Below, piece by piece: positions 7,513-36,812 of a stretch of DNA of 64,000 bases (within the stretch, counting starts at the first letter, position 1; the number at the start of each line of letters is the position of its first letter). The notes beneath the pieces were generated by a model, which saw nothing but the letters and a program-made list of their open reading frames with translations, had not been told where the DNA came from and did no database searches. The translations under genes were made by a program, and so were the position numbers. This DNA is from Thalia democratica. Its lineage: Eukaryota. The stretch spans positions 26,350,001 to 26,414,000 of the forward strand of contig OZ241829.1 of assembly GCA_965202585.1 (NCBI GenBank), given 5' to 3'.

Positions 7513-10500
7513 TTACCTGAATACAAGATCATAAATTTTTCAAGTTATTTTATTTGACACTAAAAAGTGTGTGTTCTAATCATACTAAAATAAAAGTTAT
7601 GTTTTTACACACAAAAACTAAACTTATTTAGTAGAGAACTTAGTATGAATAAAATTTTATGATCTGACATTTGTATGATCCTTTTTTTAATTTAGAAAAT
7701 AATTAATTTACCTGAATTCACTAATCATGTCTTCGTGAGCTTTAGTCACAATGTTTTCTCCAAAAACTTTTGCATTGAACTCTTCTTTAAACTTTTCTGT
7801 AATACAAATTTTTTGTTGCTGTAGTTGAAGGTTTAGCATTTATAATGTATAATAGAGGTGGTGAGAACAAAGCTTTTAAACATACAAGATCTTATTTTGT
7901 CAATCAAATTGATTTATAGTACGAAATAACTCTGATGAGTGGTGTTTGACGTTTCTTAAACTAGCTTAGTAAAGATCATATCTTTGGGTAAACAACATTT
8001 TAACAGATTGACTAAACAGAAAAAAAGTTAGACATCATGAATTAACTTTTAATAAAAGAATAAGATAACCTGTATGCTGTTGAGGAGATATAATCTTGTA
8101 GTCATAATTGAGCTTTAATTCATCCATCAAATGTTTATGTTTCTCTTCCATTTGTTCATACGTGATTTGGCTGTATTCGTAGTTTTTAAAAGACAGGCTT
8201 GAAGGTTCTGATTTTCCAGATGGATTGTAAATACCTGGGCAGTTAAATACTTAAAGCAAAAAGAAAAACTTTTTAGTTTTTTTTAAAATAAACTTTACTT
8301 CAAGCAACAGTTGAAAATAGTATACATTGTTAACATTTGTTTTTATAATTAGTTAAATCAACAGGCTAGTTTACGTCTTAAGTTTCGAAATTTTACTGCA
8401 CAGATTATAGAATAACCATTTGAGTGTAAAACATGTCTAACAAAATCATTCACAAAAAAATCAATCTGACCAAGTTTAAAGTACGGGACCCTGCCTTGCG
8501 CGTTGTTGCCCACCGGAAGCTTTTCATCGACGACTGTGACGTCATTAACTAGCAACCTGACCCACCCCAATGACGTCATAATACCAGGGTCCGTCTTGTT
8601 TTCGCCCAGCGCGTACTCTGACCACTTGATGCGCCACTCAATTTCGTTCCAACCGCCGACGTTCAGCTCCGTCATCGGGTGCTTCAGCAAGATTCGAGCC
8701 TTCATTGTTTTATTATGAAAATACTTAAACCGTGTGCTTTTTACTTTTGAGATTACGATAAAAAGTTTTCGACTTAAAAGTAACGAGAATAACATATATT
8801 AAGTGACAATAGTTTGATTAATTAGTATTTTTTTTTTTTAAAGAATTTATTTTATATCAACCGTGACTGTGTACAAGTTTAACATTAAAACAAAATCAAG
8901 ATTAAAAAACATAACAATATTTTTATATCTAGCAAAATTATATTTACTTATGCTATGCTTTTTACTTTTACAATAAAAAGTTCTCCAATTAAAAGTAACG
9001 AGAATATTATAACTTAAGTGACAATAGTTAGATTAATTAATAATTTGTTTATTAAAAAAAAAACTTTTTTTAATATCAACTGTAACTGTGTACAAGTTTA
9101 ACATTAAAAAAAAATTGAATAGTATCACAATATTTTTTTTCTAGCAAAATTATATTTACTAACTTTATTTAATAAGATTAAATAATTTGAGTGAAAACAG
9201 AAAAATGCAAAATTAAAATAGTAACTATCTAAGTAACTTTATTAGATTGCTGATGACACTTTTAATAAGCATAAAACATTTACTTAAGGTTTATATTTTA
9301 ATAAAATTTTTTGAAACTTTATAATGTTTTAGCCTAATTTTTTTTTTTTGATATTTTTCTTACACACAAAGCTTAAAAAAATAAACAATTTTCTGTAATA
9401 TGGAAAAAATAGACTGTTTACTTTTGTAAGCAGAAGCCTGAGATAAAACACAACACAAGTTAAAACAAACGGAACCATAAAATAAAATAATTATAAAACT
9501 AAGAAACTTTCAAATTAAAACTGACTGTTTTTGCAAACACTGGTAAATTTGTACAGATATGGATGGTGAGAACGTAAAAGCAACAACTTTATCGTGTCAC
9601 AAACACATCAAAAAAAAATTTCATTTTCATCACCTACTTTCCCAAGCTTAAGTATACAAAACTAATACTTGCGTAATACAAAACTGATAGAAAAGATATG
9701 AATAGTCTTTTTAGGCAAAACATACATTTGCAATTAAGTTTACTCGCAATTTTTCAAGAGTATGGCCTTCCGCTTAGGTACGCATTTTTAACACAGAGCT
9801 AAAAGTGCAAATCCAATAAATGCGTACCTAAGTGGCAGGTTATACACTTTTTATGCCTGCTTTCATTTTGAAATAACGCTAAGGTGCGTACCCAACCGGC
9901 AGTGCGTACCTTAGCAGCAGTACACTGTGCAAACACTTTGTACCTTCTTTCGTTTTGAAAACAGCGCAAAAGTGCGTTTTAAGCCGGCAGTGCGTATCTA
10001 ATAAATGCGTACCTAAGCGGCAAGTTACTGCAAAAATTTTAAACCTGCTTTCCCAAGCCGTCGCTCGTCTCGGGGCAGTGCCTCGCTTCCCCGACTTCTC
10101 CCCTCGCAGAAATGTGGCAGTCCCCGGTCGAGACAAAGTAGCTGGGATCCGATCTCGCCTTGACCACCAAGTGCCCGTTGTAAACGCTGAGAGAAAGAGG
10201 GGGGTATCCCCCTTTCTGATACCTCACCTTCATTTTAGGGTTGAGCCCCCGAAGCACTCCTGTGGAATGGAGATGTTTTTTTTTTGTTTCGTAACGTGTA
10301 AAGTATTTTTAATTTTTCCAAATGAGTTTTTTAATTTTTCAAAAGCGTTAGCTAGTTTGAAATGGTCATAAAATGGAAATAATTTTGTCCTGATGTGTAT
10401 TAAGATAAATATAAAAAAATTCAGAAAGTTAAAATCTTGTATTAGAATAATAAAAAGCTCTTATTAAACTGTATCCGTGGTGCACGACTCGATAACCGAA

Positions 10501-13500
10501 AGGTATTTTGCACACCAGGTCTTTGAACTAAAATTTTTGAAGGCTTGTTTTTTTGTCGTTCAATAAACAATTTAATTTAACTTATAAAGTTTACTTGTAT
10601 ATAAATAAAACAGCTTTTAAGAAATATGGTTTTTGCAAGTTGCTGATTTATAGTTTAATTTAATGTGTTATTAAAGTGCTTATCAAAATGAGTTTATAGG
10701 CTAAATAATATATAAAATCTTGTACAAACAATTGCAGCCATAAGCACCTTGTAATGTGTAGTTCTAACTAATTCAAGAACTTTTTTGCAAAAAAAAAAAC
10801 GGGTTTAATGTTTTAAAAAAAACTAACCGTCTTTGCACTGTCCGTTGCACAGCTCTTTTAGGAGTCGCAGACCGACTTTCAGAGGGAACCCGGATCCGGT
10901 GGCTCGGATCACCCGGGGATCGGGCGTGTTGTGGAACTGCGAGATGATTGCTTTTGACGTCACAGTGTTTAATTTTATCATGTACTTGTGCACGTGCACG
11001 TTTTCTATTGGCCGATTCGCCGCCGAGCACAGAACCTGATTGGTGCTCGGAAAGTAACCGTCTTTGCGGACTGCGGAGTTGTAAAACAATTTAATCGATT
11101 TTTACTCTTCGTAAAAAGTTTAATAAAATTGTAAAAATAATAAAGGATCTGTTATTTCAAATAAGCTGAAACTTATTAAATGTTTAGTAAAGCATTGAGA
11201 AGATTTTAGCTCTAGCTGAATTTTAAAACTAACGTTTTTTCATTTCTTTTTGGTGTGTAGAACTTTTATTTTTTGGTACAAAGCAGCTTGCAAGTTCAAG
11301 CCTGGATTTTTCACCTTTTTTGTTCAACTTGTATTTGAAACTAAAAACGTTATTAGATTTGATCAGGTAAGTTTTTTTTTTGGTTAAAAAAACAACAGTT
11401 TAAACAAGTAATTTTTAAAAGTATTACTTTGTCAAAAAAAATTGGAACAAAAATAAAATAAATTAAATCAGTTTAAAGTTTTTATGTTGGTTTATGTTGG
11501 TTGTTTCATTAGTATCATTTATTTAAACAGTAAGTATTTGAAGTCAATCAATTATTAGTTGAAATGGAATTGTTTTTATCCTAAAAAGAATATTTTAATT
11601 AGATATAAGTCGGAAATAATAAAAAAAAATTACGATTACAAAATGATAGAAATGGTTAAAAGGTTCAACAATTATATTTGAATGCAGCTTGTAAATAAAA
11701 GCATTAAATATGTAATTGAAACAGAGTAATCATTTCAAAGATATTGCTTATATATTACAAACATTTAGTTATAAAACTCAGAAACTTTTTTATAACTTCA
11801 TAACTGTCCAATTTCTTTAACAACTATTTTAATAAAACCATTCATAAATTATGAATTATCTCAGTGTTTTTAATATTTTTAGTTACTTTAGTAGTATATT
11901 TCACTGTTTTTCAAACTATATAAATTACACGTACTTTGTATATAAACTTTGTTGTATTTTAATATACTTAAAAAAAAAAAATGATTTCAAACATTTAAAC
12001 ATCTTTGAATGTTAAAGTTTTAAAAAAGCATTTCTTTAGTTTTAAAAACAGTTATATAACATTATGTATACTTGATAGCTTTGGTAGTCAGCTAAAAATT
12101 GAAGTAAAAGCATATTCTTAAAAACTGGATTATTAAAACTAAAATTTTTATAAAATGATATACAATTCTATCTATGTGGGAAATAAAATAAAGGTACTAT
12201 TAAAATCACATTAAGGGTGTTTTGAATTGTATAACAAACCTTTTAGAATTTTTAAAAATAGAATGTCCATACATTTTCAATTAAAAGTATCTTACTTGTA
12301 CTCATAGTCAAAATTGCCGTCTGAAATATTTTTTGTTTTTGTGATGAAAATTTTGCTTGACTTTTTAACATTTCTGGAAACCTGCACCCATTGGTTGTTT
12401 ACGACGTTATCTAAAACATTTTTAAACTAATTGACTTGTTTATAAGTTGTAGTTTAAGAAATTGTATTGTTAGTAAGTAAATTTTAAAAAGTTTTAATGC
12501 CTTATCAAGTAAAAAAGAATAGTACAGCTTTTAATATCCTAAAGTATACGATTTTACACTTAAAACACATTAAAACATTTAAAAAAATTCACCTAGTTGT
12601 TTCAAAACATTTGTTTTTGCTTTATTTCTAACTAATGAATCAAAATTTAAAGTATGAGGAGCACGAACTTTTTTCAACAAAGGTTTTCCCAAGATCAGAC
12701 TTTGGAAGGTTGCTGCATTGAAAACAAGTGTTGCTGTCCTCAAGCAATCCTTTGCAAGATTTATTTTTCGCACAAGCTGCTTCGGCTTGCCTCGTAGTGA
12801 CGTCATCTAATTGTAGTAACGTCAGTAATTTTTTTTGTAGTATTATTTTTTTGAAACGTATTTTTTATAACACAGCAACGACCACAAAAGAAAATGTAGC
12901 GACCAAATGAACAGTTTCAAATACTTAAAAATTCTAAGCGCAGATATATAAGACATTATCGTAAAAATATTCAGTGTTAAATTTTCAAATAAGTTTAAAA
13001 AAATTTAGATCCATTCCATTTTGTTGAGAGAATTATAATTATGATAACAGTATTTTAAAAGTTCGGTTGGATAGCATTATTTACTTAGCGACCAAATTTT
13101 CTTAATAAAACCTGCTACGTTAAACTATTTTATGCCACATTAAAGTTTCAATCAGCTTTAAATGTTATTTAAAAATTTTTAAACTATTTTGAAAATTTGG
13201 AAAGGTTTACTTAATGATCAAGAAAAAATTGGAGTTTGCATATTGTTTTAGATTTACAAAAAATAAAACACCTTTTGTCGTTGTACTAAATGGAAATGTA
13301 GTTGGAAATTTATTTGGTGTATTTGTTGTTGTAGAAACTGATGAAGTTGTTGTAGAAACTGAAATCGTTGTGGGCTTTGTAGTAGGAACTGTTGTTGTTG
13401 TTGTTGTTGTCGTTTTTGTTGTAGTTGTTGCAGTTTTTGTTGTTGTTGTTGTTGCAGTTTTCGTAGATTTTAAAGGAGGAATTTTTGTTATTGGAGTAGA

Positions 13501-15824
13501 AACTGTTGTTAAAGTAATTGTTGTAGGTGTTGTAAAGGGAGCTAGTTCTGTTGTTGTAGATGAATGTGCAGGAATTAAGTTTGTTGTAGTTTTTGTTGAA
13601 GAAGGAACTAATGTTTTTGTTGAAGGAGTTTGACTAGGATATGAAACTTTTGCTGTTGTCGGAATTATTATTGTGTTATCATCTAAACTTAGATAAGGTA
13701 GTCGTAAATATCCAAAGATAGCGAATCCCAAAAGAAAAACTACAACAGGTAAAATTGGGAAAATTATTTTAACTAAGCTAATGTATATTTTTTAAAAATG
13801 TATTTAAATTTAGTTTTAATTTTTTGTCACTATAAAAGTAAATAGAAGTAGCGTTATAAAATTGATTGAAACAACAAAACAAACTATATCATTTCTAAAA
13901 CTCTTATGTAGTAATAAAAATATGTCTTCACAATACATAAGTACCGTTAATTCAAATCGGTTTTTGCAAAGCAGTTTATTTTTTTTGCTTTTGTTTGAGG
14001 TCACATATAATATACAAATCTACTATTGTTAAAAAATTGTATAAATATTATTTTTTATCTAGGATAAGAGTATTTAGAAAATTTCTACACTCTAACTAAT
14101 AAGAAATAAACAACAAACTTATAGAACTTAATAAAGTTTTCTTCCATTTTTTTAATAAGTTTGATTTATGCTTTTTGAAAGATTTAAAACTCTGGATTAG
14201 TATATTAGGTTTGGTTTGAAAGCTTTCATCTATATTTTCTTTAGTTGCTGTTATTGAAAAATAATATTAATGATTTAATCAGTTAATTTAAAAAATTGCT
14301 TAACCTAGTATAAAGAGTTTTTTACAAAATGGTTGCAGTATGTTTTATTTATTACTAGTCTTAATATTAATAGTATTACTAATATTATTTCTAAAACTGG
14401 TAAACAATTTAATTTAAAAGGATTACATGACTACTCGGACAACACAAACTCTTAAAAAATGTTTGGTAGGCCATACCTCTAAAAGTATAAAATATTTTTC
14501 AATGTTTAAAAAAAATCGTTTGTAGATCTTATTAAAATTATGATGTTAAAAAATTAACTAAAATTGAACCTATTAAAAGATAAATTTCAAATTTACTAAA
14601 AGTATGTATATTTTTAAACTCATTTTAGCTACATCTCTAAAAATTTTTAAAACTTTGCAAAAAAATTGGTGAGTAGGTATTAAATATACCTACATACGTA
14701 CTTTTTATTCTTTAAAATAAATATAATTTTATAACTTGTGGCCGTTTATGAAAAATTTCAAGAACTTGAATTATCGTATTTGAAATGTCAGAATTTAAAT
14801 CGTGCACCCCTTTAAAAGTTATCCTATTTATTATCATACTTGCTAATTCAAGTTAAACTATGTAGAAAATTTATGACCGTTTATTTGTTTTTATGTTTAT
14901 AAACTTAACAACTAATTAGAATGAATTATTTCTTTATTCAGTATGGCTTGAAATTAACAACTAATTAGAATGTATTATTTCTTTATTCAGTATGGCTTAT
15001 AATTTAAATCATTGTAAAAAACTTTGTTGTTTTTTAATTTATGTTTAAAAACTCGACGTACATTCGTAATAGTAAAAACTAATAGATTGTATTTTATCTT
15101 CAACAATATACTTAAATAAATTTGTCACATATGTACTAAAAAGTGGAATGTTTAAATCAATATTCTCAGTTTAAGTATCTGTTAATTATGACAGTAAATT
15201 TATCTGAAGTTCAAAACAATTTAGGTGTGACGTCATTATTACTGCGTATATTAATTCTAAAAATCTTACTCCTTAACACTTATACAATTTTTTTGTATTC
15301 GTAGTCGTTCTTAACACTTATACAACTTTTTAGGACTATCAGCAAGCAGTTTTGGATTGAAAAGCTTGACTGCTATAGCTTTTTTTACTGTGAATTCATA
15401 TTTACTTCATTGATCGACTTACGATTTAGCAGTAAGGCAAAGAAAATTATAAATCAAGAAAGTATATTTTGGTTTATATTTGTCCGTTTTAATCACTCCA
15501 TAATTTTCATACTGTTTGGGATATCATAAAGTTATAAATTAAATTTTAGACAAGTTTAAAGCTAAGTTTCTAAGCGTTAAAAAAAGTCATTTTAGTATAG
15601 TTTGGGGTGGTACAACTGAAGCAAGGCCCTGCTTGAAACTTTTTGTAGTTTTTTTTTCTTTTTCTTTTTTCAAGGTGGAGCAACTGCTCTAACGTTCTAC
15701 CTCACGCGTCGACCCTGGTATAAAGTAAAATTAATATATTTTTATTACACTTACATTGATTTTCTTCAACCATAAACGAGCTGCTGTTGTAAGCTTCTTT
15801 TGTATTGTAGAAGCTTGTGTCCAT
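7513..15824 (-). CDS. Membrane-anchored heparin lyase I-like (PL13-like) polysaccharide lyase with mucin stalk, 12 coding exons, ~660-670 aa
   Basis: Phase-consistent GT-AG exons: 15824-15755 (MDTSFYNTKEAY...), 14229-14119, 13772-13272 (TM IIFPILPVVVFLLGFAIFGYL + Thr-rich stalk), 12806-12669 (Cys-rich), 12410-12296 (VVNNQWVQV), 11340-11234 (KSRLELASCF), 11070-10828 (AIISQFHNTPD), 10259-10045 (QKGGYPPLSLSVYNGHLVVKARSD), 8723 or 8699-8471 (WNEIEWRIKWSEY...VGNNAQGRVPYFKL), 8234-8070 (GIYNPSG...), 7796-7712, 7516-7513 (stop). The first two exons and the terminal exon are the least certain. Confidence 0.85.
8774..9164. repeat. Intronic tandem duplication, ~213-bp unit x2
   Basis: ttaaaagtaacgagaat at 8774 and 8989; ctagcaaaattatatttact at ~8929 and ~9141. 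Confidence 0.85.
13272..13700 (-). repeat. Low-complexity Thr/Ser/Pro-rich (ACA/ACT-rich) mucin-like coding tract
   Basis: ORF-track 13207-13731: TTTTTKTATTTTKTTTTTTTTVPTTKPTT. The antisense Val-rich ORF 13214-13633 is its shadow. Confidence 0.9.
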
Positions 15825-23100: not shown

Positions 23101-25179
23101 TTTCTTAACGTTCTTTTATTCATCTCATAGGATTACTACACTATCATTAAAAGGCCCATGTGCCTACAAACGTTAGAAGATAAACTCAACAGAAACCAGT
23201 ACAAAAGTGCAAGTGATTGTATTGAAGATATTCAACTGATATTCGATAATTGCCACGCTTACAACCCTGTTAGTTTTTTTTTTTTTTTTTGTTTATATTC
23301 ATAAAGTTTCGTTAGCCTTCCTAGGTATAGAAAGGTAAAAAAATATACTGTATAAAAAGCTTGATGAACAGTTATCAAATAAAAATTTGTTCAAGCTTAA
23401 CCAACTGTANNNNNNNNNNNNNNNNNNNNNNNNNNNNNNNNNNNNNNNNNNNNNNNNNNNNNNNNNNNNNNNNNNNNNNNNNNNNNNNNNNNNNNNNNNN
23501 NNNNNNNNNNNNNNNNNNNNNNNNNNNNNNNNNNNNNNNNNNNNNNNAAATACTGCTACAATTCTATAAATTATAACATTAACAACAAAGTATTTAATAT
23601 AAGATTAAATAATAAATACATTAGGTAAATACCAAAGTTTCTGATTTGGGACAAAAACTAGAAAGGTTTTTCAACAAAAAGATGAAGGAATTACCTTACG
23701 TCGAAAAAGAAATAGCAGTGGAGAAAAATAACGACAAAAACAGAAAAAGAAAATTTGATCCATTAAAAATGAATAAGGAAATTAAACCTTTGGAGGTATT
23801 TATTTTTTTGATTGTGTTCCTTTAAATATCTATGTTAACTTTATAAAATACCATCAAATAGCTTTGCAGACGCCCATGCTTTTTAATTTTGTTTAGAATG
23901 ATACTTCGATAGCTTTTTAAAATTTATTTCACTTAAAAGTTTGAATAGTATTATGTAAATTATAAGAAAAATTAATCTTAGATGAAGAACAAAAGCAGCA
24001 AGAAAATAAAACGAAGTAATGAATTGCCGCGTAAGAAAATGTCTTCTTCAGTTTTATCGCCAACAGAAATAGAGTTTTTTTTGTTCTTAGTTTTATATGT
24101 AAAAAAATTAACGCTATTTATTGTATTTTTGTTTAGAAATCAAACATTAGCATCTCTTTTTTAGTAAACTACCTGAAATAGGTTGTCATTCATTAAAATT
24201 AGGTAAATAATTAGTTATTAGCAATAAATATATAAGAATAAGAAAACATTTTTACTTCGTAAACTCTTATGAAGCTCTTTCAAATAATTGTGTTTACATT
24301 ATCTTTTAAACATTTCCCAAGTATAACAAATATAAGATTTAATAATATAAATTCTTTTTCATTAGTGATGAACAGCGTACCAACAAAAAGCTCAAAGTTA
24401 GGTCCAATGAAGAAAAAAGATCGATTATGAAGAAAGTAATAAATTTATCAGCCAATCATCATGAACAAGCGACCAAAATAGTTATAGTAAGATAAATTTT
24501 TTTTATATGTAATAGTAAACAAAATTAACTGATTTCAGACGGTTTTAAAGGATTTTTTACATGTTAATGAGTGAATGCTTTTTAACTTCATACTCAATTA
24601 AAACGTTAACACTATAGGTTTTATATAAAACAAAAGTAACTTAATTTTATTGATAAGATATCTAAAGTTTATTTATAAATTGAATGATTATGATAAATGC
24701 CTTTGTTTGTTATTAACTACTTCATATTTTTTTCTAATTTATTTCAAGTCTTGTCGCAAATTAATGTTGTTTACAACCTTGTTATAATAGAAACTGGAAA
24801 AAGATCTTATGGATCGCAAGGGAGATCATGTCTTTAACGATGAGATGTTCCAAATCTATCCCGAAGAAGTTAGTGACAGTACTTACAATGAGGTGGAAAA
24901 ATATTTAAAAAGATTCCGTTCAGTTGTAACAAGTATGTCTTAGTCTTTAAATTTCCTTTGTAAAATGAAACTTAAACTAAGTTAACTTAATTTAGTGTTC
25001 ATTCGAACCGAATGAAATACTTATGTTGCGTTAACCTAAAGCTTAGAGTAACATTGCTTATCAATTATACAGATCTGAGCGACTCTAGTTCATCTTCTTC
25101 GAATGATTCATTCTTGTTCAAAGTTTCTTCACTTAATGAAAAATGTCTCACTAACGGTTCAAACACGATGGACTAGTTC
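20130..25179 (+). CDS. BET-family-like protein with one bromodomain and an ET domain, 7 exons, ~280-330 aa
   Basis: Exons 20130-20282 (STNQLVFIKNELL...FSWPFRKPVDVVALNIP), 23131-23268 (DYYTIIKRPMCLQTLEDKL...FDNCHAYNP), 23625-23795, 23982-24073, 24366-24486 (SNEEKRSIMKKVINLS), 24791-24933 (FQIYPEEVSDSTYNEVEKYL), terminal exon from 24996 or 25073. TNQL, WPF, PVD, DYY and NC..YN are BET BD1-type motifs; exons 5-6 resemble the ET pattern SYEEKRQL...[20 protein letters not shown]. Confidence 0.85.
20340..20425. repeat. (AAT/AATGAT)n microsatellite in intron 1
   Basis: aataatgatagtaataataatgataataat...gataatgatagtaat. Confidence 0.85.
20960..22450 (-). mobile_element. Decayed Penelope-like retroelement (RT + GIY-YIG) inserted antisense in bromodomain-gene intron 1
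   Basis: Minus-strand fragments in the expected order: KNELGRISKNILGK...EIIQWF (22450-22310), DVPMGSF and LYRDNILAII (22120-21960), sequence resembling the WFNPPF..SVKTN...SYSCM motif (~21560-21420), CIGSTGGPFKTRCYGH...CMTCSYEKMEV (21250-20990). Many stops and frameshifts. Confidence 0.8.
22660..22800. repeat. Degenerate (AAT/AAC)n low-complexity tract
   Basis: aataataatgaaaataatgacaataagaacaataacaatattaacaataac... Confidence 0.75.
23410..23547. other. Assembly gap (138 N) in intron 2 of the bromodomain gene
   Basis: Run of N; ORFs 23361-23576 and 23387-23569 are artefacts of it. Confidence 1.
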
Positions 25180-25602
25180 AATTTCTCTTCAATTTATTCT
25201 AATTGTATTAATAAACTTTCTAAAACTGGAATTTTTAGTGTAAATTAGTAATACTCTTCTATTTACTACTAAATAAAATATAAAATATTATCTACTATAT
25301 TCTTACTACCAGTGTAAGAATGAACATTTAAGATTAAATTATTATTTTGCAAGTTACTTTTATTATCTTTAAAGTAATTATTGTAACATATTTTAAAGAT
25401 ATGAAAAAGGCAGGCAATGTTAATCATTTACTTTAAAGGTTTTATACAACGAACAACATCTAATTTTAATTTTCGTCTTTATTTTAAAATTTCAACCCAA
25501 TTTCCGACTTAAAATTATTTAAATTTTCTAAAAAGCTGTTATAAATATTATTATACTATTTTTTAAAGTTTTTAAATATATGGAATAAAAACAGTCTATG
25601 TA

Positions 25603-26425
25603 TATGGGTAGGGGTCAGAAAAGCACAGCGTCACTTTAGCACGGGGTGATACTTGAGCACGGAGTGACACTTTAGCACGGAGTGTCACTTTAGCACAGAG
25701 TTACACTTTAGCACGGAGTGACATTTTAGCACGGGGTGACACTTTAGCACGGAGTGACATTTTTGCACGTAAAAATTTTAAATCTTTTTAAATGTTTATT
25801 TAAATAATGTTTAATTATCTAAAACAATTAACTGAACAAAAAAACAATTGTGAAATTTAGATTTAACACTTTAAAAAATATCGTCTTAGAAAAAATTATA
25901 AATAAAGTTTTTGCTATGTGCTTAAACTGAAATAAGAAAGTATTTAATCTTTATATTTCTCACTTTTTATTTAAACCTTACGCTTAAAGTTTAGTCTTAT
26001 TAGATTAGATTATTATTAGATTAGTTAAAGCATTTTTAAAAATTTAATAATCTTAGAGCTTGTATTTATTGCTAACTTTATTGAAATTGTTTTATGTCGA
26101 AAACTTTAAAGTAAATGTATCAAAATATTTTCATCTAAAATTAAATAGTAAGACAAGTTAATAAAGTTTTTTAATTAAATTTTGTCATAGTTTTAGGTAA
26201 AACTTAAACTTGTAACTCATTTAAAGCTTGTTTAATTTTAGTTTACATGTTGCAATGTTCGTTTTTAGATTTTTTAAATAATACAGTACCTAATGTGATT
26301 TAGGCAAAGGAAAAAATGCAAAATAAATTCTGTGCTAAAATGACACTCCGTGCTAAAGTGACGCTATGCTAAAGTGACACTCTGTGCTAAATTGTCACCC
26401 GTGCTTTTCTGACTGGTTCCCATGT
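25603..26425. mobile_element. Non-autonomous DNA transposon with TIRs and 18-bp subterminal tandem repeats
   Basis: Left end atggg...gtcagaaaagcac followed by ~8 copies of gtgacactttagcacgga (25625-25770); right end has ~4 inverted copies (26330-26405) then gtgcttttctgac...cccat. Confidence 0.8.
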
Positions 26426-26679
26426 ATATAACTTATTTTGGTTTTTTTCTAACATCTTGTTTTTATCCTAGAGAAGAAAATTTATTCAGCTGAAATAAAA
26501 GCTTCATGTATCCAAAATATTATTAAAATAAAAATTATATATTAGTTTGTATTTAGCAAATTAAGAGAACATTTTTCTTCTAAATCTAATCTCTTTAGCT
26601 TAATGAAGTCTTAAAGTTTATAAAATGCTTTTTGAAAATATTTCAAATATTATGTATTTAAGAATAGGTTGTATTAAAA

Positions 26680-27030
26680 TAGGGGTCAGCAAACATTTAG
26701 TGGTCGCAGGCCAAACTTTAAAATTAATAATAATTGAATCGAAATAATATATTCAAAAGAGCATATATATATATATATATATATAATATTTACAAATTAT
26801 AACATTCTACAAAAACACTGTAGTTAAATTTTACTAAACATACAAACCCACAATATCATGTGTAACTTTTAAACTTACTTTAAACTTTCCTAAAGTCGTG
26901 TACAATATTTTATTTCACATCAAGCATCAAAATATTTTGAGTGAAATTAAGACCGTGGGACGCGGTTTAACCCGAAAAGATCCCATTTGAACTAAAAACA
27001 TGCTCGCAGGCAGCAGCTTATCGACATCTG
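26680..27030. mobile_element. Degenerate hAT-type MITE
   Basis: Left end taggggtcagcaaac, weak right end ttatcgacatctg; a related end (accgacccctg) occurs at ~1165-1175; (AT)n tract at 26762-26786. Confidence 0.4.
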
Positions 27031-29137
27031 TATTAGAAAGTAACTAATAAAAAGTAACAGTTAAAAAGCAGTTTTGTTAACTTTCAAAAAAGTATGGTTT
27101 AGTTAACTTAATTCAAACTAAACAGTCTATAATATCTTTATTGTTTCATTTAACATATAGTTACTTTGAAATTTTGATGCTAATTTTAACTTGTCAACTT
27201 AAATACACTGTGACATGCTTTTTGACTTTGTGTAAAAATAGTTTTTAATTTTAAATAAGTAATAATTTTTGGGCGAAAACAATAAGTCTATAAACTTTTT
27301 CAATAAACATGTGACGTGTTTAGACCGCTTTTCTAGAGCTTGACAAATTAAAAATAATAAAGAAAAAAACTTTAACTAAAATAGTTTTATCTATAAAATT
27401 AGTTTCAATTAACACTTGTACTTTTGACAGTATTTAGAAGATTTGGTTATGCTTCTTTACTTGATTTTAAATGTTGAATACAAGAATCTATACAACCCAA
27501 TACCATAACGATATGTAAAAGAAATTTAAGTCTTAATAAAAACATTTTTTTTGCGCTGTTGTTAACCGCTGATATACTAGATAAAAATTAACATTTAGTT
27601 ACGTTTTCATAAATAACTTATAGATTTTTAGAGCCTACCTTTGAATTTATTCACCAATACTAGATATTTCTTAAATCTAAGAAATTAGTTTAAGGTTTCT
27701 TTATAGAAACAAACTTTAACAAGCTCTAAATTAATTTCGTAAAAACAATCTTTTAAAATAATGCATAAAACTTTGAAGTATAAGGAAAGGCTAGTATTAG
27801 CAAATAAACTTTAAAATGCACTATTTTGTACCAAGTCCTTTGTTAATAGTTTATAAGCGTTGGTTTATTTATCGTGTTCAAAAAACGTATTTGTTTTTGT
27901 ATAAGATAATGCAATTTTTCTTAAATTCAATAACTTTTGATGTTGAGCTCAATCATTTTATTTGTGGAAAGAAAATTTATTTACAATCAAACTTTTATTT
28001 AATTTTAATGTAGTACTTAAAATTCGGGTATATAAAAGCAGATTCACAAAAATATTTCGAATTATCCTTTTTTAAATACCATATTTTTTTTTATTTTTAG
28101 GTTTTCCTTCTTACATTTTACATAAACTGACCAAGTCATATTAATGACTCGATCACGACATTAATGTAGCTAAATTAATTTTTATTTTTATTGCCATTAT
28201 TTCGAGCTGAAATATTCCAAGGTACTTTATCTTTCAAATTACTTTAAGAATATAAATGCTAGTACCAGTAATTTTTTTGTAAGTTAAATTAAATTAATTA
28301 AAATTTGTTAGTTTAAGGTTATAATCTAGTAACTAAGGGATTTTTTTAGTTCGTGTTTCAAACGTTTAACTTGATTTGTTTTAAAACTTTAATCAATAAT
28401 TATTATTTAATAACAGTGTCTACAAAACTTAAAATAGTTATTAATTAGCTTTTAAGACTTTCTATTATTGTATTTAACTTTTAATTTTTTTCTCAAAATA
28501 ATAGCCAGCTATTATTATTATTGAAAAATATCTGCATATCTAACAACTACTAGTTACTTATTTTCTTAAGCAGTTGATTTAAAACTTTTGTGTTAAATTC
28601 TAGTTCCAGCAAAAGGTTTTTGCTCACTAAAACTATCTTTTAAAACTAAACTATAGAGTTTTATTCATATTTATTTATACTAATAAGATCACTAAGTAAC
28701 ATACTGTTTATAAAACAGTAATTTGAGAAAATAAGAAATAAATAATTAACAAATAAAAACTAAATAATATTTATAATTTTTGTTAATTGTTTTACATATA
28801 CACTAAATTTTATTTTAACAAATAAATGCTCAAATACTTGAGTAGACACTTACACAACTTTAAAAAGTCTTTTTATTTAAGAAGCTAAAAAATACTTCAG
28901 TATCTTTTAAGGAAAAAACTGTTTCTACCTCATCTATTAAAGCCTAGACAAGCCTCTGAAACTATTTATTGATTTTGATGCTCAAAAAACTGAATGCATT
29001 TTAAGTCTTAACTAGTTCAAAATGTCTTTTACTAAGTAGGTGCACACATTTAGGAATAAGGAGAATATTCCCACTTTTGTCAAGTATAAAAGTACTTAAA
29101 ACACATTAAAGTTTTATTACAGTTTATCTAAACTAAA

Positions 29138-31510
29138 GTGTCTCCTGAAGAAACTCACAATATTTCTGAAGAAACACTGAAATCCGCAGTTCAGTTACAG
29201 CTTATTAAAAATGAGTTTTAACCAATTTTGATGATTCTTGTTTGAAGATTCAGCTGGCCTTTCCGAAAGCCCGTATATGTAGTTGCATTGAATATTAAGG
29301 TTGGTTTTTAGTATTAAAACTAAACTTAAAGTAAAGCGTTCAATATTTTTTTTGTAGTTAAATTATTGTGTTATAAATAGTCAAAATCCTTTATGAAGTT
29401 TCCAAAATATCTTAGTTTTTAAACTTAGTTTGTTAAAACCTTAAGCATATCAATTTATCCAAAATATCTTACTGATCTATACATAAACAGTTTTTTAATT
29501 ACTTTTGTTTTTTATGATGTCTTAACTAAGTACTTTGAATATTATGTTAAGAAGTCATTAGAAAGACTTTTTTTTTAAGTAGTTTTTAATTTCTTTTATA
29601 ATCATTTTTTTAGTTTTTTATCGTTCTTTTATTCATCTCATAGGATTACTACACTATCATCGAAAGGCCCATGTGCCTACAAACGGTAGAAGATAAACTC
29701 AACAGAAACCAGTACAAAAGTGCAAGTGACTGTATTGAAGATATTCAACTGATATTCGATAATTGCCACGTTTACAACCCTGTTAGTTTTTTATTTTTTT
29801 GTAATTGAAGGTTATAAACGTTAGCCTACTTAGGTATTTGAATATAAATTAAAATAGTTTACAAACAGTTATGATATAAACGTTTGTTGAAGTTTTAAGT
29901 CTTTTAATTTTAATATTACTTGACATATACTTCAATAAATAACTTAATTAGGTAAATACCAAAGTTTCTGATTTGGGACACAAACTAAAAAGTTTTTTTA
30001 ATAAAAAGATGAAGGAATTACATAATGTCGAAAATGTAGTGGCAGTAACAAAATAAAACAAAAATAGAAAAAAAAACTAATTTATCAAAAAAGAAGAAAG
30101 AAATTAATCCATAGAAGGTATAAAATTAATTTTATTGATTTAAAACTTAAAAATTTATTATTTAAATTCCTATCAAAAAAACTTAGTGAAGACCTATGCA
30201 TTTACATTTGTTTCAAAAAGTAATTAATTTTATTTGAAATTATATCCCAAGACAATTTAAACATTACCTATCAATCATATTAAAAATTATTTTAAATAAA
30301 GGCCAATGGCACAAAAAAAATTAAACGAAAAAAAGAAGTGCCGTCCAAAAAAATATCTTCTTCAGTTTTATCAATAACAGAAATACAGTTAGAGTTTCTT
30401 TGTGTTCTAAGTTTTGCGCATAACAAAAAATGATACTTTTTATACTAGTAAATCAAGGAAAAAAATATTAGCAACAATATTTTTTAGTAAATTAACGACA
30501 TAAATTGTTTTCCAAATAAACTAAGGGAATAAATATATCATAAATTTACAAATAAAATACACAATTTTAATTCAATTTCTGAAAAACACTTCACAAATTA
30601 TACAAATAATTTTTTAACAATGAATTAACTCTTGTCACATTAGCAGTGCACAGCATACCAAGTAAAAACAAAAATTTAGTTCTATTGAAGAAAAAAGATC
30701 AATTATAAAGGAAGTAATAAATTTATCAGCCAATCAGCATAAGCAAGCGACCAACATTATTATAGTAAGTTGTACTATTTAATTTATACTAGTAAACAAA
30801 AAGTTTTTTTTTTTATGAATACCAGACATAAATGATTGTTTACAAGTTAAGTTTATGAGCGAATTCTTGTAAGCTTCTTACTCAATCAAAACGTTGATAG
30901 TAGAGGTTTTATGTAAAACAAAAGTAACATATTTTTAATAACAAGGTATCTATGGGTTTAATTGAAATTTGCATAATTATAAAACATGCTTTAGTTGTAG
31001 TTATAAACTATGTTGTAATGTTTTTCTCATTTTAAATCTTGTCGTAAATTAATTCTGTTCAAAACTTTATTATTATAGAAACTAGAAAAGAATCTTATGA
31101 AACGCAAGGGAGATCATGTTGACTATGATGAAGTATTCTATATCTATCCATAAGAAGTGATGGTACTTACAATGAAATTGAAAAATATTTAAAAAGATTC
31201 CGATCAGTTGTAACAAGTATTTTTCAGTCTTTTTATTTCCTTAATAAAGTAAAACTTAAACTAAGTTAAATAGTTCTAAAATTTGTTTATGCTTTAACTT
31301 AATAGGATCAAAAAATAATGCTGAATTTACTAAAACCCCGAAGTAACGTTATTTAATATTTTTCCAGATTTAAGCGATTCCAGCTCATCTTCGAATGATT
31401 CTTTAGGCCTAAAATCCCCCGAGTTCCTAAAAATTTTTGAATAAAGCTTTTGAGTTCAAAGCTTCTTCAGTTACTGAAAAATTTCCCATTCAAAGTTCAA
31501 ACACGGTGGA
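29138..31510 (+). pseudogene. Tandem pseudogene copy of the single-bromodomain/ET gene
   Basis: Homologous exons at ~29138-29300, 29644-29781, 29952-~30117, ~30300-30387, 30644-30764, 31079-~31218 and from 31368. ATG is replaced by GTG; in-frame TAA at 29219-21, 30054-56, ~30663-65 and 31151-53. Confidence 0.85.
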
Positions 31511-34369
31511 CTAGTTTAATTTCTCTTCGATTTTAGTCTAACAGCGTTAATAAACTTATTGAAATACTTTCTTTGTTCAGTGTGAAGTATTAATTTACTT
31601 CTAGTACAGCTACTTAACATTAAAAAGTAAAACTAAAAACTTTTCCATAAGTTTTTATTTGAATAGCGTTTTCGTTGAGTAACTTAAAAAATATAAATTC
31701 AATGTTGAATTATATCGTTATAGGTTACTTCTATTATCAGCACAACTATTCATAATGACATACTTTTGCTTTTTTTTTCTGATTAAGCTAATAAATATTA
31801 AAATTCGTGATTTGTTTGAAACTATTATAGCTAATTACAATAAAATGTACAGTTTAAAGCAGCAATTGTGCTGGAGAAAAATAATTAAAATAAGTTTTTC
31901 TTAGATTTTAGATTGTTAATTTCTTTAAGTTTTAGTATAATGTTTGTTTTTATTAAAATATGAGTAAAACGAGCTGATATAACTCTTATGTTGAAGTTTT
32001 AACACATCAGTTTAAACTAATATGAAATAATTTCATACAGACAGAGCACTAAGTTATAAGTTTTAAAAATCATTTATAATAATAATATAACTTAACATAC
32101 CATTTTCTAGGAATAATTTTTTCTTATATACGTAAATAAAATGAAGAAATTTTTATTCAATCGGTAAAGTAGCTGTATAGAAATCGTTATCTGCATATAA
32201 TAGATATTTAGTAGCCTATCTTAATATCTTACTTGCCGTAAAACTAAACTCTTTTAAAAAATGAAAAGATTAGCAGTTTTATTGCGAAACAATATATAAA
32301 GCGCACACTTGTTTTCTTTATTTAGTGCATTTTATTACGTGGTAAAGTGTGGTAGATAGTTTTTGACTTTAAAATAATTTTGGACATTTTTTTTTTCTTC
32401 CTAAGACGTTAGCGCTGTACGACCTACTTATTAACTTATTGATTAACCTTGCTATTTTAGTTGAAAGCTAGCTAGCATGGGCCTAAAGTCATGGTAAATT
32501 ATCACCATACTGTAATAGGCTGTAAATAAACTTTCCATAATAATCAAACTTTCTGTAAAACTCAAGTAAACTGGACGCTAAAAACAAACTGCACGAAATT
32601 TATTACAAAAAGATAAATAAAAACGATTTATTTTACTGCAAAATTAAGGAGAAAAACTAATATAACAAAAGCTTAAAAGCCTAGATTAAAGTGTTAAAAG
32701 TGTTTTTATGACTATATGCATTTATTATTTTGTGAAAAAAAAAGAGTTTTTTATTAAAAAAATCGTTTAAGAACCTTGCTTTTTATTTTGCATTAACATT
32801 AGTACTATTACCTGCGTTGATGTCCATTTGGTCTCGTGTTGTGTCTTTTTCCTTACTTGATGCTCTCGTGATGATTTGTGGTACAGAGAACATCTTTTTT
32901 GATTTAGTTGATATATTGCGAAGGCCGGAGTTAGACATTCAGTATTTATTTTGTTTAAATTCCTGGTTTAACTAATATAAACAATTTTTAATATTGAAGT
33001 AAGTGCACAAAATTTATACTACATTAGGTGAAAGTGACTACAACAATTATACAATATACACAAAATTTTCATGATTAAAATATTCTCGACAATGTGTTGA
33101 GCTTCGAACTTTTAAATTTCTATCGTAGCAGTGCTAAAGTGATTTTCGCGTCTCTTATTTTCAGAGAATAACTTTTTCCAACTTTGCTTCGACAGACGGA
33201 AATTATCAAATTAAAACTAATGGAACAAATCAGAGAATTGAACCAGCCTCAGCAAATATCGTATAGCGACCAAGGGTTTAAAAAAAGTAACGCTATTTAA
33301 AAAGCAACCGCGTATATATACGAACTGGATATAATTTATTTCCCTTGATAACCAATGTTTTTGTGGGAAACATTGGTTTAAAAGCGTTGTTGTTTATTGT
33401 TTCTGTTTTAACATAGATTATTTCTAAAAACCATATGCCATCGACACAGTATTTTTTGCCATTTTGAGTATTTTTATTATTTTTCAAAATATAAAGTTCA
33501 GACTTTACCTTTACTGACACTTTATATTAGTAAAATAGCAAATTTGCCATTATTTTTGTAAACTTAACGATTATTACACTAATGTCGTATAAGTCTAGCT
33601 TAAATTAGTCAAAAGTAAGAATGTAGAAAATTTTTACAATCTAATTTAAAAAAACGTTCCGTGAAGGCTCTATTTAAAAACCAATATTTTACCACAACAA
33701 TAGTCGAAAACTAAAATACGACATAACTGTTTTCTGATTTGCAATTAACTTTGTTTGTGGTTATTGGTTAGTAATATTGTCCAGTGTACTTAACTTCGAC
33801 AAATAGAACCGCTCAGCTTATATATATACATTTTATTTAATTACAGCGTGGCAGTTGTTTTTTAGATTTTTGATAAAGTAAGCGTTGATGTTATTATGAG
33901 TTGAAATTTTTACTTTAAAACGACAAACTGATTAAATTTCTATTTTGTTAGTACTTTGAAGTATTAGTATAACTTAGTTAATACATTAGATACATCTTTT
34001 TTGTAGTAAATTTTGGCATTCAACTTTTTAATGAATAATACTATGTTTATAAATAGTATTACTAATGTTTTTTATCAACTTTTTTTTATACGCATTGCTT
34101 TCCAAGTTTATAAATATCATAAATCTGTACATAACAGCAACTAATAAAAAGTTTCGCTCATAAAATTTTTAAAAACAGCATTTACTTTAAGAAACCCCTA
34201 CAGTTTTATTGTATTGTTTTACCTTTTGTAACTTGATGGTGTCGCAAAAAGCTTTTATGGTAAATATGACCCGGCAACTAAAAGTTTTTAGAATAATTTT
34301 TAAATATGTTGAAAAAAACAAGTACTTTAGCTCTCCATTAAAGTTTTATAAATCATAAATTTACTTGAA

Positions 34370-34460
34370 TCGGATCCGGCCAGATCTGAACTTAAAAACA
34401 GATCCGAATCTTTTTTTGAAAAAATTTCCGGACTGATCCGAAAAATGTAAATGCGGTAGT
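34370..34460. repeat. CCGG/GGATCC-rich fragment related to the hAT subterminal repeats at 61776-63603
   Basis: tcggatccggccagatctg...gatccgaatcttttttgaaaaaatttccgga. Confidence 0.45.
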
Positions 34461-36635
34461 TGCAATTAAAAGTTTAGTATATAATAAATAGTTGACTTCT
34501 TTAGTTTGGTCTATTAGTGGTTTATTAGTGTATCTCGACTAGTAAATACATTATAAAACACATTGAAGAATTATTAAGAAAAACTAATTAAGAAAAAAAA
34601 ATTCAAACTAATATTTTTGTTCATCAGTAGCTGTAATAAATTTAGGAAAGTATAACTAAGATGTTTAATTTTAAACTTTGTAAAAGTTTAAAAAGATCAA
34701 AAAATTTTGTAATAACGTTTAAACTAAAGCATTAACAAGTCGTACAATATTGTTTTTAGTTTTTTTTATTTTCTTTAGTTTATTCTATAGAGTTTATTGA
34801 TTTTATTTTAGACTTACACCAATCTAATTAGTTAATACAAATGATCACATATATAATTTGTTAAAAAAATATAAACAAAACTAAAAAACAAAAGTATTAA
34901 TCAGTGTTAGCTTTTATTACAAAATATCGGAAATTTATAACTAAAAATAAATTTAAAGATGTTAAAATTTTAAACAAGTTCTAAAAAAATTTTTCTTACA
35001 TTTTTTAAAACCACAAACTATGTTTTTTCACATAAAATTAAACATTTTGTATAAATAAGCGGAGAAAAATTATTGAAGGTCACGTTTTTTGATAAATCAT
35101 AGCAAAATGTTAACAGTTAGTCTATTAAATTTGTTTTATAAAAGTTAACAGTTGCTAAAAGTGGCGACGTATTGTGTTTTTGTTAAGGGTTGCAGAAAAG
35201 TTACAAGTGTTTGAACAATCCCTTTATTTAGTACTTTAAAACTAATTAAGTAAGATAAAAATTCTAAAATTACAACAAGTCGTTTGCAAAGAAAAGCTTA
35301 TATTATTATTAATTTTACCATTTTATAATTTTATAAGTATTCTGTTTTTTGAAACCTGCTCGAACGCTCCACTCCCGCGACTCCCCTGTTTTTTAAATAA
35401 ACTTGCGTCTTTAGTTTAATAAGTTATTATTAGATTTCTGTCTTCTGATTAGTCCTAATGTTAATATTATAATTGTTGTGTTAATTGCAGTTATTAGTAA
35501 TTTGTTCTAACGATAACAGTTATTAAGTTTATAGCTAAAGATATTCTAAGAATACATAGTTAAATATAAATTATTAAGTTAAACTTTAGTCTTGAATATA
35601 AATATTTAAAACATTAAGTTTTTTTTTTATTTCAAATAGTTTTTAACGTATGATTGAAAAATAGGAAGTAAAAGTACACTTAAGAAACATCATTGACGAA
35701 AAAATTAACTTCACTAGCTGTTAAAAGTTATAACTAAAACTTAAACACAGGAAATTTTATGTTTTAAACTATTATAAAAGCAAGAAACAAATTAACTTTT
35801 CCCATGTCGGTAGAATTATGAAGTTAAACAGTTATAATAATATCTAATGTACAATTTATAACTTTTTTTTACAAAACTTAACGTTTTATGTATACTGTCC
35901 TGGACAAGACATTAAAAGATATCCGTGATGTGCGACTTCATAAACGAAAGGTTTTTTTGTGCACCAGGTCCTAAGACCAGATTTTTTGAGCGTATTTTTT
36001 GTCACTCAATAAACTATATATATTCTTTAAGCATATAAACAGTTTATTTTACTTTACAGCATCTTTTTAATTTTTTTTAATTAGCAATAACTTTCTTAAC
36101 AAAAAAAAACAAAATTAACATCTAAAAACTTTTAATTACTATTTTAATATATTGTATAAAACTTAGACTTTCAAATTAAAACATTTTTTCTAAGCTTTTA
36201 CTAATATATATGAAAAACATATCAATTTAGAATGTCATACCACGATTTATTATTTAACAATTCAATACTAGTTTTTGATAACTTTTTACAAATTAATATT
36301 TTAAGTTGTGTAACCTCTTTTATTGAACAACACTAACATTTAAAGTCCGTATTTTATAATTTTCGTTCAGTTAAACTAGTAGAAGTTTAGTTATTATTAT
36401 TGTAAGTTTATTGTCATACTAAGGACCCAGGCATCAAAACCTAGGCCACATATACAGAAAGACATACAATAAAAAGATAAAAATAAACCAAAATTGTACA
36501 TTAAAAATGAAAAAAAAAACTGAGTTTAACTAATTAAAGTTTAAAATTAACATAAAAACACAAAATTATAACACAAAATTTATAATTCCTGTGCTTCCGA
36601 AAAGAGAACAACAATATCCTACTCCAACTTCACCC

Positions 36636-36812
36636 GAACAAATGGTTTCACTCCAAAACTGGTTTCACTTTCATTTGATCAACTGGCTTCACATTATTTG
36701 AACAACTGGTTCAGCCTTCATTTGAGTAAATGGTTTAACTTTTATCCATACAACTTGTTTCAATTTTAATCGTATAACTAGAACCGCTTTTATCTGAACA
36801 ACGTGTTTCACT
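36636..36812. repeat. Degenerate ~24-bp tandem repeat, ~7-8 copies
   Basis: Recurring gaacaactggtttcactttcattt-like unit. Confidence 0.6.

Follow-up and report, generated by a model that had tools for sequence, protein, structure and literature searches.

What is a gene for a heparin-lyase-like domain, split by introns, doing in the genome of a tunicate: is it a recent import from bacteria, an assembly artefact or an old eukaryotic gene, and could its product still cleave polysaccharides? These questions are raised by a gene on the minus strand of a 64,000-nt stretch of the Thalia democratica genome (contig OZ241829.1, positions 26,350,001 to 26,414,000; hereafter, the window), whose catalytic domain resembles heparin lyase I (HepI) of polysaccharide lyase family 13 (PL13), an enzyme type that is not described in chordates. 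A previous analysis, made from the letters of the window without database searches (the sequence-only reading), had proposed a spliced gene at 7513-12410 that was probably acquired from a bacterium and domesticated. We favour a different history, in which the window gene is an old, tunicate-wide PL13-type gene rather than a recent import, and in which its product is a probable extracellular lyase.

We compared the spliced protein with a hidden Markov model of 87 HepI open reading frames (ORFs) from Bacteroidota and obtained a score of 39.6 bits, compared with 6.3 bits for the best of 1000 shuffled sequences. Residues 197-532 of the partial gene model matched in colinear order, beginning at the VVNNQW segment and ending with the GIYNP segment. 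When exon E of the gene (described below) was searched exhaustively against 1.84 billion representatives, four full-length relatives (P0003-P0006) were recovered, which share 30-37% identity with the window protein over 315-376 residues (E 1e-45 to 7e-61). When a profile of nine relatives was searched against the PDB (177,635 sequences), heparin lyase I alone was significant (E 2e-33 to 1e-29), the match spanning chain residues 13-375 of 382 and the next-ranked hit having an E-value of 0.024; similarly, an eight-sequence domain profile (A3) detected the HepI genes of three Bacteroidota genomes (E 1e-31 to 3.5e-40). The window gene was scanned exon by exon against Pfam, and exon E, as a single exon, scored 22.9 bits (E 8.6e-5) for PF14099 (Polysacc_lyase), under the curated cut-off of 29.9 bits. 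The relatives P0003-P0006 scored 44.9-53.2 bits and the Styela protein 60.2 bits for the same family, and the Ciona, Phallusia and Styela proteins all exceeded the cut-off. Searched individually against the PDB, exon D gave marginal heparin lyase I hits (E 0.12-0.19) that were ranked under spurious ankyrin matches, and exon E gave nothing relevant; no NCBIfam model matched any family member.

Structural comparison pointed in the same direction. The AlphaFold (AF2) model of P0003, which is 37% identical to the window protein, had a mean predicted local distance difference test score (pLDDT) of 67 and a predicted template modelling score of 0.70, and its seven best Foldseek matches were all heparin lyase I (E ~1e-16), followed by PL20 (1e-9) and PL7 (1e-8). 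This beta-jelly-roll model is nearer to HepI than to PL7, PL20 or other scoring jelly-roll lyases. The top cluster for the model in the ESM Atlas was annotated as 'heparin lyase I family protein' (TM 0.63), and the second-best structural match in AFDB was A0A7M5VG02, an uncharacterised 376-aa protein whose accession block may be hydrozoan. On the evidence of the profile and sequence comparisons, homology to PL13 over the whole catalytic domain is solid.

The domain is encoded by six exons on the minus strand (12410-8070), each bordered by an AG acceptor and a GT donor, with matching phases (1/2/1/1/0/1) that join them into a single open frame. Exon A (12296-12410) begins the PL13-like domain, and the position of the intron preceding it is common to Ciona and Clavelina. 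Exon B (11234-11340) carries the KSRLEL motif with K275 and R277 (the counterparts of Lys81 and Arg83 of HepI), and exon C (10828-11070; GC content at third codon positions (GC3), 0.66) carries the QFH motif with Q344, H346 and D350 (the counterparts of Gln149, His151 and Asp155) and the start of the thumb. Exon D (10045-10259) contains the GGYPPL and ARSD motifs, with Q395 at the counterpart of Glu222; exon E (8471-8723) contains the WRIKWSEY and GNNAQGRVPYFKLG motifs, retaining Asn345, having Ala at the counterpart of Asp346 and supplying K535 (Lys353). The GIYNP motif is finished by exon F (8070-8234) with Y539 (Tyr357), where the domain ends.

Two marine metatranscriptome runs share words with the locus. 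Because a 240-nt RNA contig from run X2 is contiguous over exons A-C without mismatches (12358-12296, 11340-11234 and 11070-11001, at contiguous record coordinates), junctions A/B and B/C were observed. A second contig covers 13378-13272, stops at the predicted exon 2 donor and continues with 13 letters matching 12806 onward, which brings the RNA-backed splice junctions to three (exon 2/exon 3, A/B and B/C). Junctions C/D, D/E and E/F were accepted because of their phase, the introns shared with Ciona and Clavelina and, for C/D and E/F, gap-free protein alignment to P0003 and P0005, whose ORFs run uninterrupted on short assembled contigs. At the D/E junction, the window protein has an 11-residue insertion relative to its homologues; exon E has an alternative in-frame acceptor at 8699 besides that at 8723, and its use would drop eight of these residues.

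The full gene comprises about 11 exons (15824-7560, minus strand) and encodes about 627 residues with zero internal stops; ten exons (13739-7560) form one open frame with AG/GT borders, to which a putative exon 1 adds in phase. The protein starts with a short N-terminal part, a single hydrophobic anchor and a stalk rich in Thr; a Cys-rich linker then leads to the PL13-like domain, which is followed by a tail. Putative exon 1 (15755-15824; ATG at 15824, 23 codons plus 1 nt, strong donor GTAAGT at 15754) ends in phase 1, which suits exon 2, and is the sole in-phase ATG exon found upstream of exon 2, although its assignment is tentative. An earlier candidate for exon 1 at ~13934-13897 was dropped, the exon at 15824-15755 having a consensus donor. 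Exon 2 (13272-13739) encodes both the hydrophobic segment (residues 24-42, with the top 19-residue Kyte-Doolittle mean of the whole protein, 1.58) and the Thr-rich stalk (residues 43-180; Thr 42%, Ser 11%, Pro 11%). Exon 3 (12669-12806), which is in phase at both ends and conserved among paralogs, encodes the 46-residue Cys-rich linker, for which the Pfam search matched no family. Downstream of the domain, exon G (7712-7796) encodes the C-terminal tail in phase, with a translation 58-100% identical in three paralogs, and exon H (7560-7584), the putative last coding exon, follows the first in-phase AG acceptor downstream and carries a stop codon ending at 7560; this exon is also tentative.

The gene is genuine, intact, intron-bearing and at least partly transcribed. 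In these respects the sequence-only reading was largely borne out: the borders, phases and single frame of its six exons stand, with A/B and B/C seen in RNA, and its claim of an intact, intron-bearing gene agrees with the open frame without internal stops and the spliced RNA. The span that it gave contains correctly listed exons but is too small, since further exons lie upstream to 15824 and downstream to 7560. It had given a motif order like that of heparinase I, and the motifs that it listed for the bacterial enzyme match the Pedobacter heparinus HepI sequence almost letter for letter. The PL13 homology that it proposed is upheld by the profile score of the spliced protein (39.6 bits; shuffles, 6.3 or less), and the structural comparison gave HepI as the top Foldseek hits, for the relative P0003 rather than for the window protein.

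The same data bear on the possibility that the gene is an artefact, that is, bacterial contamination, an assembly chimera or a dead pseudogene with seeming exon joins. Two features could be taken in this sense. Exons C-E (10828-11070, 10045-10259 and 8471-8723) are 51-59% GC (GC3, 0.66-0.72) and thus far GC-richer than the rest of the locus, where the six later flanking coding exons are 24-42% GC (GC3, 0.21-0.45), 2-kb windows are 24-31% GC and the introns are AT-rich by eye; and a second copy, 99.4% identical, lies 81 kb away. However, the gene is inside an 85.7-Mb contig of an AT-rich, 802-Mb genome, its AT-rich spliceosomal introns occupy positions shared with Ciona and Clavelina, spliced RNA exists and the frame has no internal stops. 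Moreover, a six-frame profile search of the genome yielded 36 exon-level matches, corresponding to about 13-14 loci on four contigs: C1 (49.16 Mb), C4 (53.73, 53.75 and 53.77 Mb), C5 (17.96, 26.31, 26.36 (the window gene), 26.44, 29.68-29.78 and 61.34 Mb) and C7 (37.98 Mb). With at least 13 loci on four contigs, and with exon boundaries that coincide across the seven paralogs compared, an artefact is very improbable, and both the spliced RNA and the introns in common with Ciona and Clavelina contradict it. The GC-rich central exons also occur in the C5 17.96 Mb and C4 53.77 Mb paralogs but not in those at C4 53.73 and 53.75 Mb, which marks them as a trait of particular copies and not as foreign DNA; the pattern may reflect GC-biased gene conversion between copies.

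Homologues were identified by name in the ascidians Ciona intestinalis (LOC100183141), Phallusia mammillata, Clavelina lepadiformis and Styela clava, and in the choanoflagellate Salpingoeca urceolata (EukProt). The family is present in all three ascidian orders, and further relatives were obtained from Tara Oceans metatranscriptomes and other assemblies; the relative P0025 is on a compact GC-rich contig, where it adjoins a eukaryotic SelB gene. The window gene agrees exactly with Ciona and Clavelina in four intron positions and in their phases; two further introns are no more than 8-12 alignment columns apart, and these two ascidians have one intron more than the window gene. The phase-1 intron that splits the YFKxGIY motif is at the same alignment column in Ciona and Clavelina. 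Among other named animals, no homologue was found in the protein searches run here; a word-indexed protein search with profile A2 missed known members, returned one bacterial hit only and is unusable as evidence of absence.

We also searched for prokaryotic carriers. A pattern scan of 185,579 prokaryotic species genomes gave no confirmed relative with the eukaryote-type PYFKxGIYNP motif, profile A3 gave no confirmed relative among prokaryotic genome contigs, and the same profile found only four exon-like fragments in metagenomes. PL13 was detected in 1 of the 401 Bacteroidota genomes sampled, namely the seed genome, and no new sequences were obtained. Two candidates came to nothing: a Streptomyces parvus locus from a QGGYPPLAF pattern scan was dropped as a chance match (tree branch length, 10), and the family profile matched nothing in the genome of an Oscillospiraceae candidate locus. 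A genome scan for GH6, a tunicate hallmark, gave no match and was uninformative, the controls being likewise unmatched.

In a maximum-likelihood tree (LG+C20, 31 rows), the HepI proteins of Bacteroidota and one Anaerolineales protein were placed on one side (80/79) and the choanoflagellate-type and tunicate sequences on the other, with the choanoflagellate-type clade (100/99) adjoining the tunicate clade (87/95). Within the latter, the window gene groups with six other loci of its own genome (100/100); a Tara sequence is sister to this group, and the C1 paralog pairs with P0005 (100/99). The motifs PYFKxGIYNPSG and DWxGPxGR, as well as paired Cys residues in a shortened thumb, are common to the tunicate and choanoflagellate-type proteins and have no bacterial counterpart. 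These comparisons indicate that the gene is shared with sea squirts and a choanoflagellate, and that it is not a recent bacterial import.

Another possible history is a direct transfer of a bacterial PL13 gene into the tunicate stem, followed by the gain of introns and fusion to animal modules, the choanoflagellate-type copies having arisen by a separate or a eukaryote-to-eukaryote transfer. This is consistent with the facts that every characterised PL13 enzyme is bacterial, as is every PDB hit, that the protein searches gave tunicates alone among named animals, and that PL13 is rare and patchy even in Bacteroidota (1/401, as above). The bacterial-type cellulose synthase of tunicates provides a precedent. 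We nevertheless regard such a transfer as rather unlikely, given that the tunicate and choanoflagellate-type proteins share derived features and form one clade (80/79) in species-tree order, that the eukaryote-type motif was absent from the prokaryotic genomes scanned, and that the PL8 lyases are a precedent for an ancient holozoan glycosaminoglycan (GAG) lyase lost from most animals (bioRxiv 10.1101/211789). The acquisition of a bacterial lyase, as inferred in the sequence-only reading, could have taken place, but the gene is not private to this lineage, occurring in all three ascidian orders and sharing four introns with Ciona and Clavelina; in the phylogeny, the nearest outgroup proved to be the choanoflagellate-type clade and not bacteria, with an order that mirrors the species tree. 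Domesticated horizontal transfer is therefore possible and is not favoured over an ancient origin.

According to the history that we favour, the family would have entered or arisen in eukaryotes once, long ago, and would already have borne introns in the common ancestor of the window lineage and the ascidians. Because the derived motifs are shared with the choanoflagellate-type proteins and absent from bacterial sequences, and because no prokaryotic carrier emerged from the scan, a single old eukaryotic entry, or a eukaryotic origin of the clade, is more parsimonious than two transfers from unsampled sister donors. Since the order of the tree mirrors the species tree, transfer and vertical inheritance from a holozoan ancestor, followed by many losses, account for it equally well, and the sampled bacteria and animals may be compatible with both vertical inheritance with loss and later receipt by tunicates.

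We then examined whether the residues required for catalysis are present. The numbering of Bacteroides thetaiotaomicron HepI (Bt-HepI) was calibrated on the B. thetaiotaomicron ORF (offset 16), in which Gln149 and His151 lie in QWHG, Glu222 precedes QGGYPPL, Asn345 and Asp346 lie in GRND, and Lys353 and Tyr357 lie in YFKFGIY. In the alignment, K275, R277, Q344, H346, D350, K535 and Y539 of the window protein correspond to the conserved Lys81, Arg83, Gln149, His151, Asp155, Lys353 and Tyr357, so that the Gln/His pair of QxH and the Lys/Tyr pair of YFKxGIY, named previously as the retained catalytic residues, are indeed in place (Q344, H346, K535 and Y539). The counterparts of K81, R83, Q149, H151, K353 and Y357 are retained in every paralog row covering these columns. 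The gene is under purifying selection, with ratios of nonsynonymous to synonymous substitution rates (dN/dS) of 0.14-0.24 between it and four diverged paralogs (dS > 1.7). Because the full catalytic set is retained under purifying selection, lyase activity is plausible, and we judge it somewhat more probable than its absence.

Most likely, the domain faces the extracellular side, with the hydrophobic segment acting as a signal-anchor and the Thr-rich stalk being open to heavy O-glycosylation, and still cleaves a uronate-containing acidic polysaccharide by beta-elimination. Gln344 would help to neutralise the carboxylate, His346 would take the C5 proton and Tyr539 would give a proton to the leaving oxygen, while Lys275, Arg277 and Lys535 would hold the anionic substrate.

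The metal site and the thumb, by comparison, are remodelled. The Ca2+ site of Bt-HepI was reported to consist of Asp155, Glu222, Trp248, Asn345 and Asp346 (PMC6688311); the corresponding residues of the window protein are D, Q, Y, N and A, so that two acidic ligands of the five are lost. The metal-site substitutions recur in six sister copies, except for gaps in one and Val/Ser at Arg344/Asp346 in another. The chromosome-1 paralog (on C1) and P0005 retain E, N and D at the Ca2+ positions, and both, as well as the ascidian proteins, keep the GRND motif. The thumb of most tunicate proteins has two or three Cys residues; that of the window protein (44 residues, still basic with 10 Lys/Arg) has two, without counterpart in the HepI of B. 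thetaiotaomicron or P. heparinus. The remodelled metal site and the shorter, probably disulfide-braced thumb suggest that the substrate may not be heparin, and both substrate and metal dependence probably differ from those of bacterial heparinase I. A lyase route for heparin and heparan sulfate, as proposed by the sequence-only reading, would be one possible use of the domain.

These changes might also be expected if the domain bound sulfated or acidic glycans in the manner of a lectin without cleaving them, as a pseudo-lyase that a mucin stalk displays in adhesion, recognition or the organisation of matrix. Degeneracy of the Ca2+ site extends across the subfamily of the window gene, the thumb is shortened, and fusions to mucin stalks and EGF modules are typical of adhesion and receptor proteins. 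In addition, the Clavelina protein P0022 (LOC143465657; locus L030) carries Gln, Arg and Asn at the positions of His151, Lys353 and Tyr357 and has been kept despite the loss of His151 and Tyr357; judging from these residues, it is probably non-catalytic, a natural pseudo-enzyme. For the window gene, however, a binding function alone appears doubtful: all seven copies of the clade keep Q149, H151, K353 and Y357, and the six with sequence at K81 and R83 keep these as well, at dS > 1.7, and the retention of all six residues is unexpected for a pure binder.

Several points tell against an old gene with a probably active product. Compared with its two closest paralogs, the window gene has dN/dS values of 0.5-0.7. 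Its subfamily has Gln for Glu222, Ala for Asp346 and Asn for Arg344, and the thumb (the D155-E222 segment) is 40-49 residues long in most tunicate proteins versus 58-66 in Bacteroidota; the loss of His151 and Tyr357 from P0022 implies that a protein without catalytic activity can keep the fold. For Gln149, His151 and Tyr357, the catalytic roles assumed here are those reportedly given in the 2009 structure paper on Bt-HepI, and a PDB entry title naming an 'H151A mutant' agrees with such a role for His151. The literature search found no paper with activity data for any eukaryotic member of the PL13 family. The predicted fold is that of a 37%-identical relative, P0003, with a mean pLDDT of only 67, and the RNA contigs show no exon 1, exon G, exon H, or junctions C/D, D/E, E/F, F/G or G/H. 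Finally, the bacterial rows of the tree are nearly all from Bacteroidota, which makes its root, and any ultimate source read from it, provisional. Taking these points into account, we assign a probability of about 0.6 to the reading as a whole, namely an old tunicate-wide PL13-type gene, not recently imported, whose product is a probable extracellular lyase.

A more specific extension of this reading can be offered only tentatively. Tunicates might make their own active cell-surface or secreted PL13-type GAG lyases, derived from a pre-animal gene that nearly all other animals have lost, and the mucin-stalk, metal-site variant into which the family has expanded in this salp-like species might act on sulfated glycans and remodel those of the tunic, of blood cells or of the mucus used in feeding. 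A natural substrate may exist, since both heparin-like and unusual sulfated glycans are produced by ascidians (PMC6627333).

The genomic surroundings of the gene provided further observations. Over 9.2 kb of exons and introns, the copy at 26.44 Mb is 99.4% identical to the window gene. A repeat at least 58 kb long, comprising window positions 1-41123 and ~16.8 kb before them, corresponds to C5:26414001-26473252 at an 81-kb offset with 96-99% identity and has the entire lyase gene inside; it may have arisen by tandem segmental duplication in the very recent past, or it may be a haplotype that the assembly failed to collapse. A partial copy (L027; C5:26309899-26312636), ~38 kb before the window, has the Cys-rich linker exon and exons A, B, C and G (64-89% identical), exons D, E and F being undetectable there, and is probably a truncated pseudogene or a chimeric gene. 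Within the intron between exons C and D, the depth of DNA-run contigs reaches 25,000-37,000 at 10450-10649, versus 300-1,700 elsewhere at the locus, with many loose ends at 10548-10571, which implies a very high-copy repeat inside the intron. The intron between exons D and E has an indel polymorphism at 9796-9885, where both DNA runs contain a form that omits 88 bases and has 7 other letters instead; it sits in a region of short repeated motifs (~9780-10030).

Elsewhere in the window, the minus-strand ORFs at 42337-42750, 58937-59239 and 60141-60416 match the Pfam Sushi/CCP repeat (E 2e-7, 3e-5 and 7e-9, respectively) and probably belong to a large multi-exon gene for a CCP protein; the right half of the window, which this gene would fill, is GC-richer. 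An intronless plus-strand ORF of 243 residues (38907-39638), situated where the duplicated block ends, encodes a cysteine protease domain of OTU-like type (E 7e-8). Two ORFs that matched nothing in Pfam come after it, in a span that includes 40368-41275 (plus strand), and it may be part of a mobile element.

To our knowledge, the textbook view assigns lyases to microbes and has animals degrade GAGs by means of hydrolases. This view is challenged, for a second lyase family after PL8, by the PL13-like genes of tunicates and a choanoflagellate, which form a conserved and expanded family under selection with intact catalytic residues. In our literature search, no publication dealt with a PL13-like gene of tunicates or choanoflagellates, and databases label the ascidian proteins as uncharacterised. 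An active tunicate enzyme, if confirmed, would be the earliest demonstration in a chordate of a polysaccharide lyase of this family, and the ectodomain of the Ciona or salp protein is a directly testable lyase candidate. With respect to genome evolution, the family is well suited to testing how horizontal transfer can be told from an ancient origin followed by massive loss; with respect to enzymology, it may represent a heparinase-I scaffold with a naturally altered metal site and a disulfide brace.

Among known systems, the closest are the HepI enzymes of B. thetaiotaomicron, B. eggerthii and P. heparinus (PDB 3ikw, 3ilr, 3imn, 3ina and 9grw), which are homologous to the window protein across the catalytic beta-jelly roll, with the same motif order and with counterparts of K81, R83, Q149, H151, D155, N345, K353 and Y357. 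Their chains are the best structural match of a family member (P0003), although the Foldseek identity to P0003 is just 17-19%. Compared with HepI, the subfamily of the window gene has a Cys-containing thumb that is ~20 residues shorter and the changes Glu222 to Gln, Asp346 to Ala and Arg344 to Asn; moreover, the window gene is a eukaryotic gene interrupted by ~10 introns, and in its product the domain is preceded by a signal-anchor, a mucin stalk and a Cys-rich linker.

The ascidian genes (Ciona LOC100183141, Phallusia CAB3262777.1, Styela LOC120347141 and Clavelina LOC143465657) belong to the same eukaryotic PL13-like clade, the Ciona and Phallusia proteins having 30-33% identity to the window protein. 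The ascidian proteins have EGF-like modules upstream of the domain (Ciona, Phallusia and Styela) and, after it, a long tail that the window protein lacks; their metal site retains the GRND motif. The choanoflagellate-type proteins (S. urceolata EP00051_P006968 and the GC-rich eukaryotic relatives P0024 and P0025) form the sister clade to the tunicate proteins (100/99) and share with them the QFHG, GGYPPL, ARSD and PYFKxGxYNPSG motifs and the paired thumb Cys residues. They are short (271-454 residues, the 271-residue one beginning within the domain) and have Ala or His at the counterpart of Asn345, and the two full-length ones have a hydrophobic, signal-like N-terminus without a stalk or EGF module. 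A broader parallel is provided by the PL8 (Lyase_8) GAG lyases of choanoflagellates, sponges and cnidarians, whose patchy distribution was read by Richter et al. as ancient presence followed by loss in most animals (bioRxiv 10.1101/211789). Although the PL8 fold is unrelated and is unreported from tunicates, PL8 and the family described here are both GAG-lyase families, otherwise typical of bacteria, that occur in holozoans.

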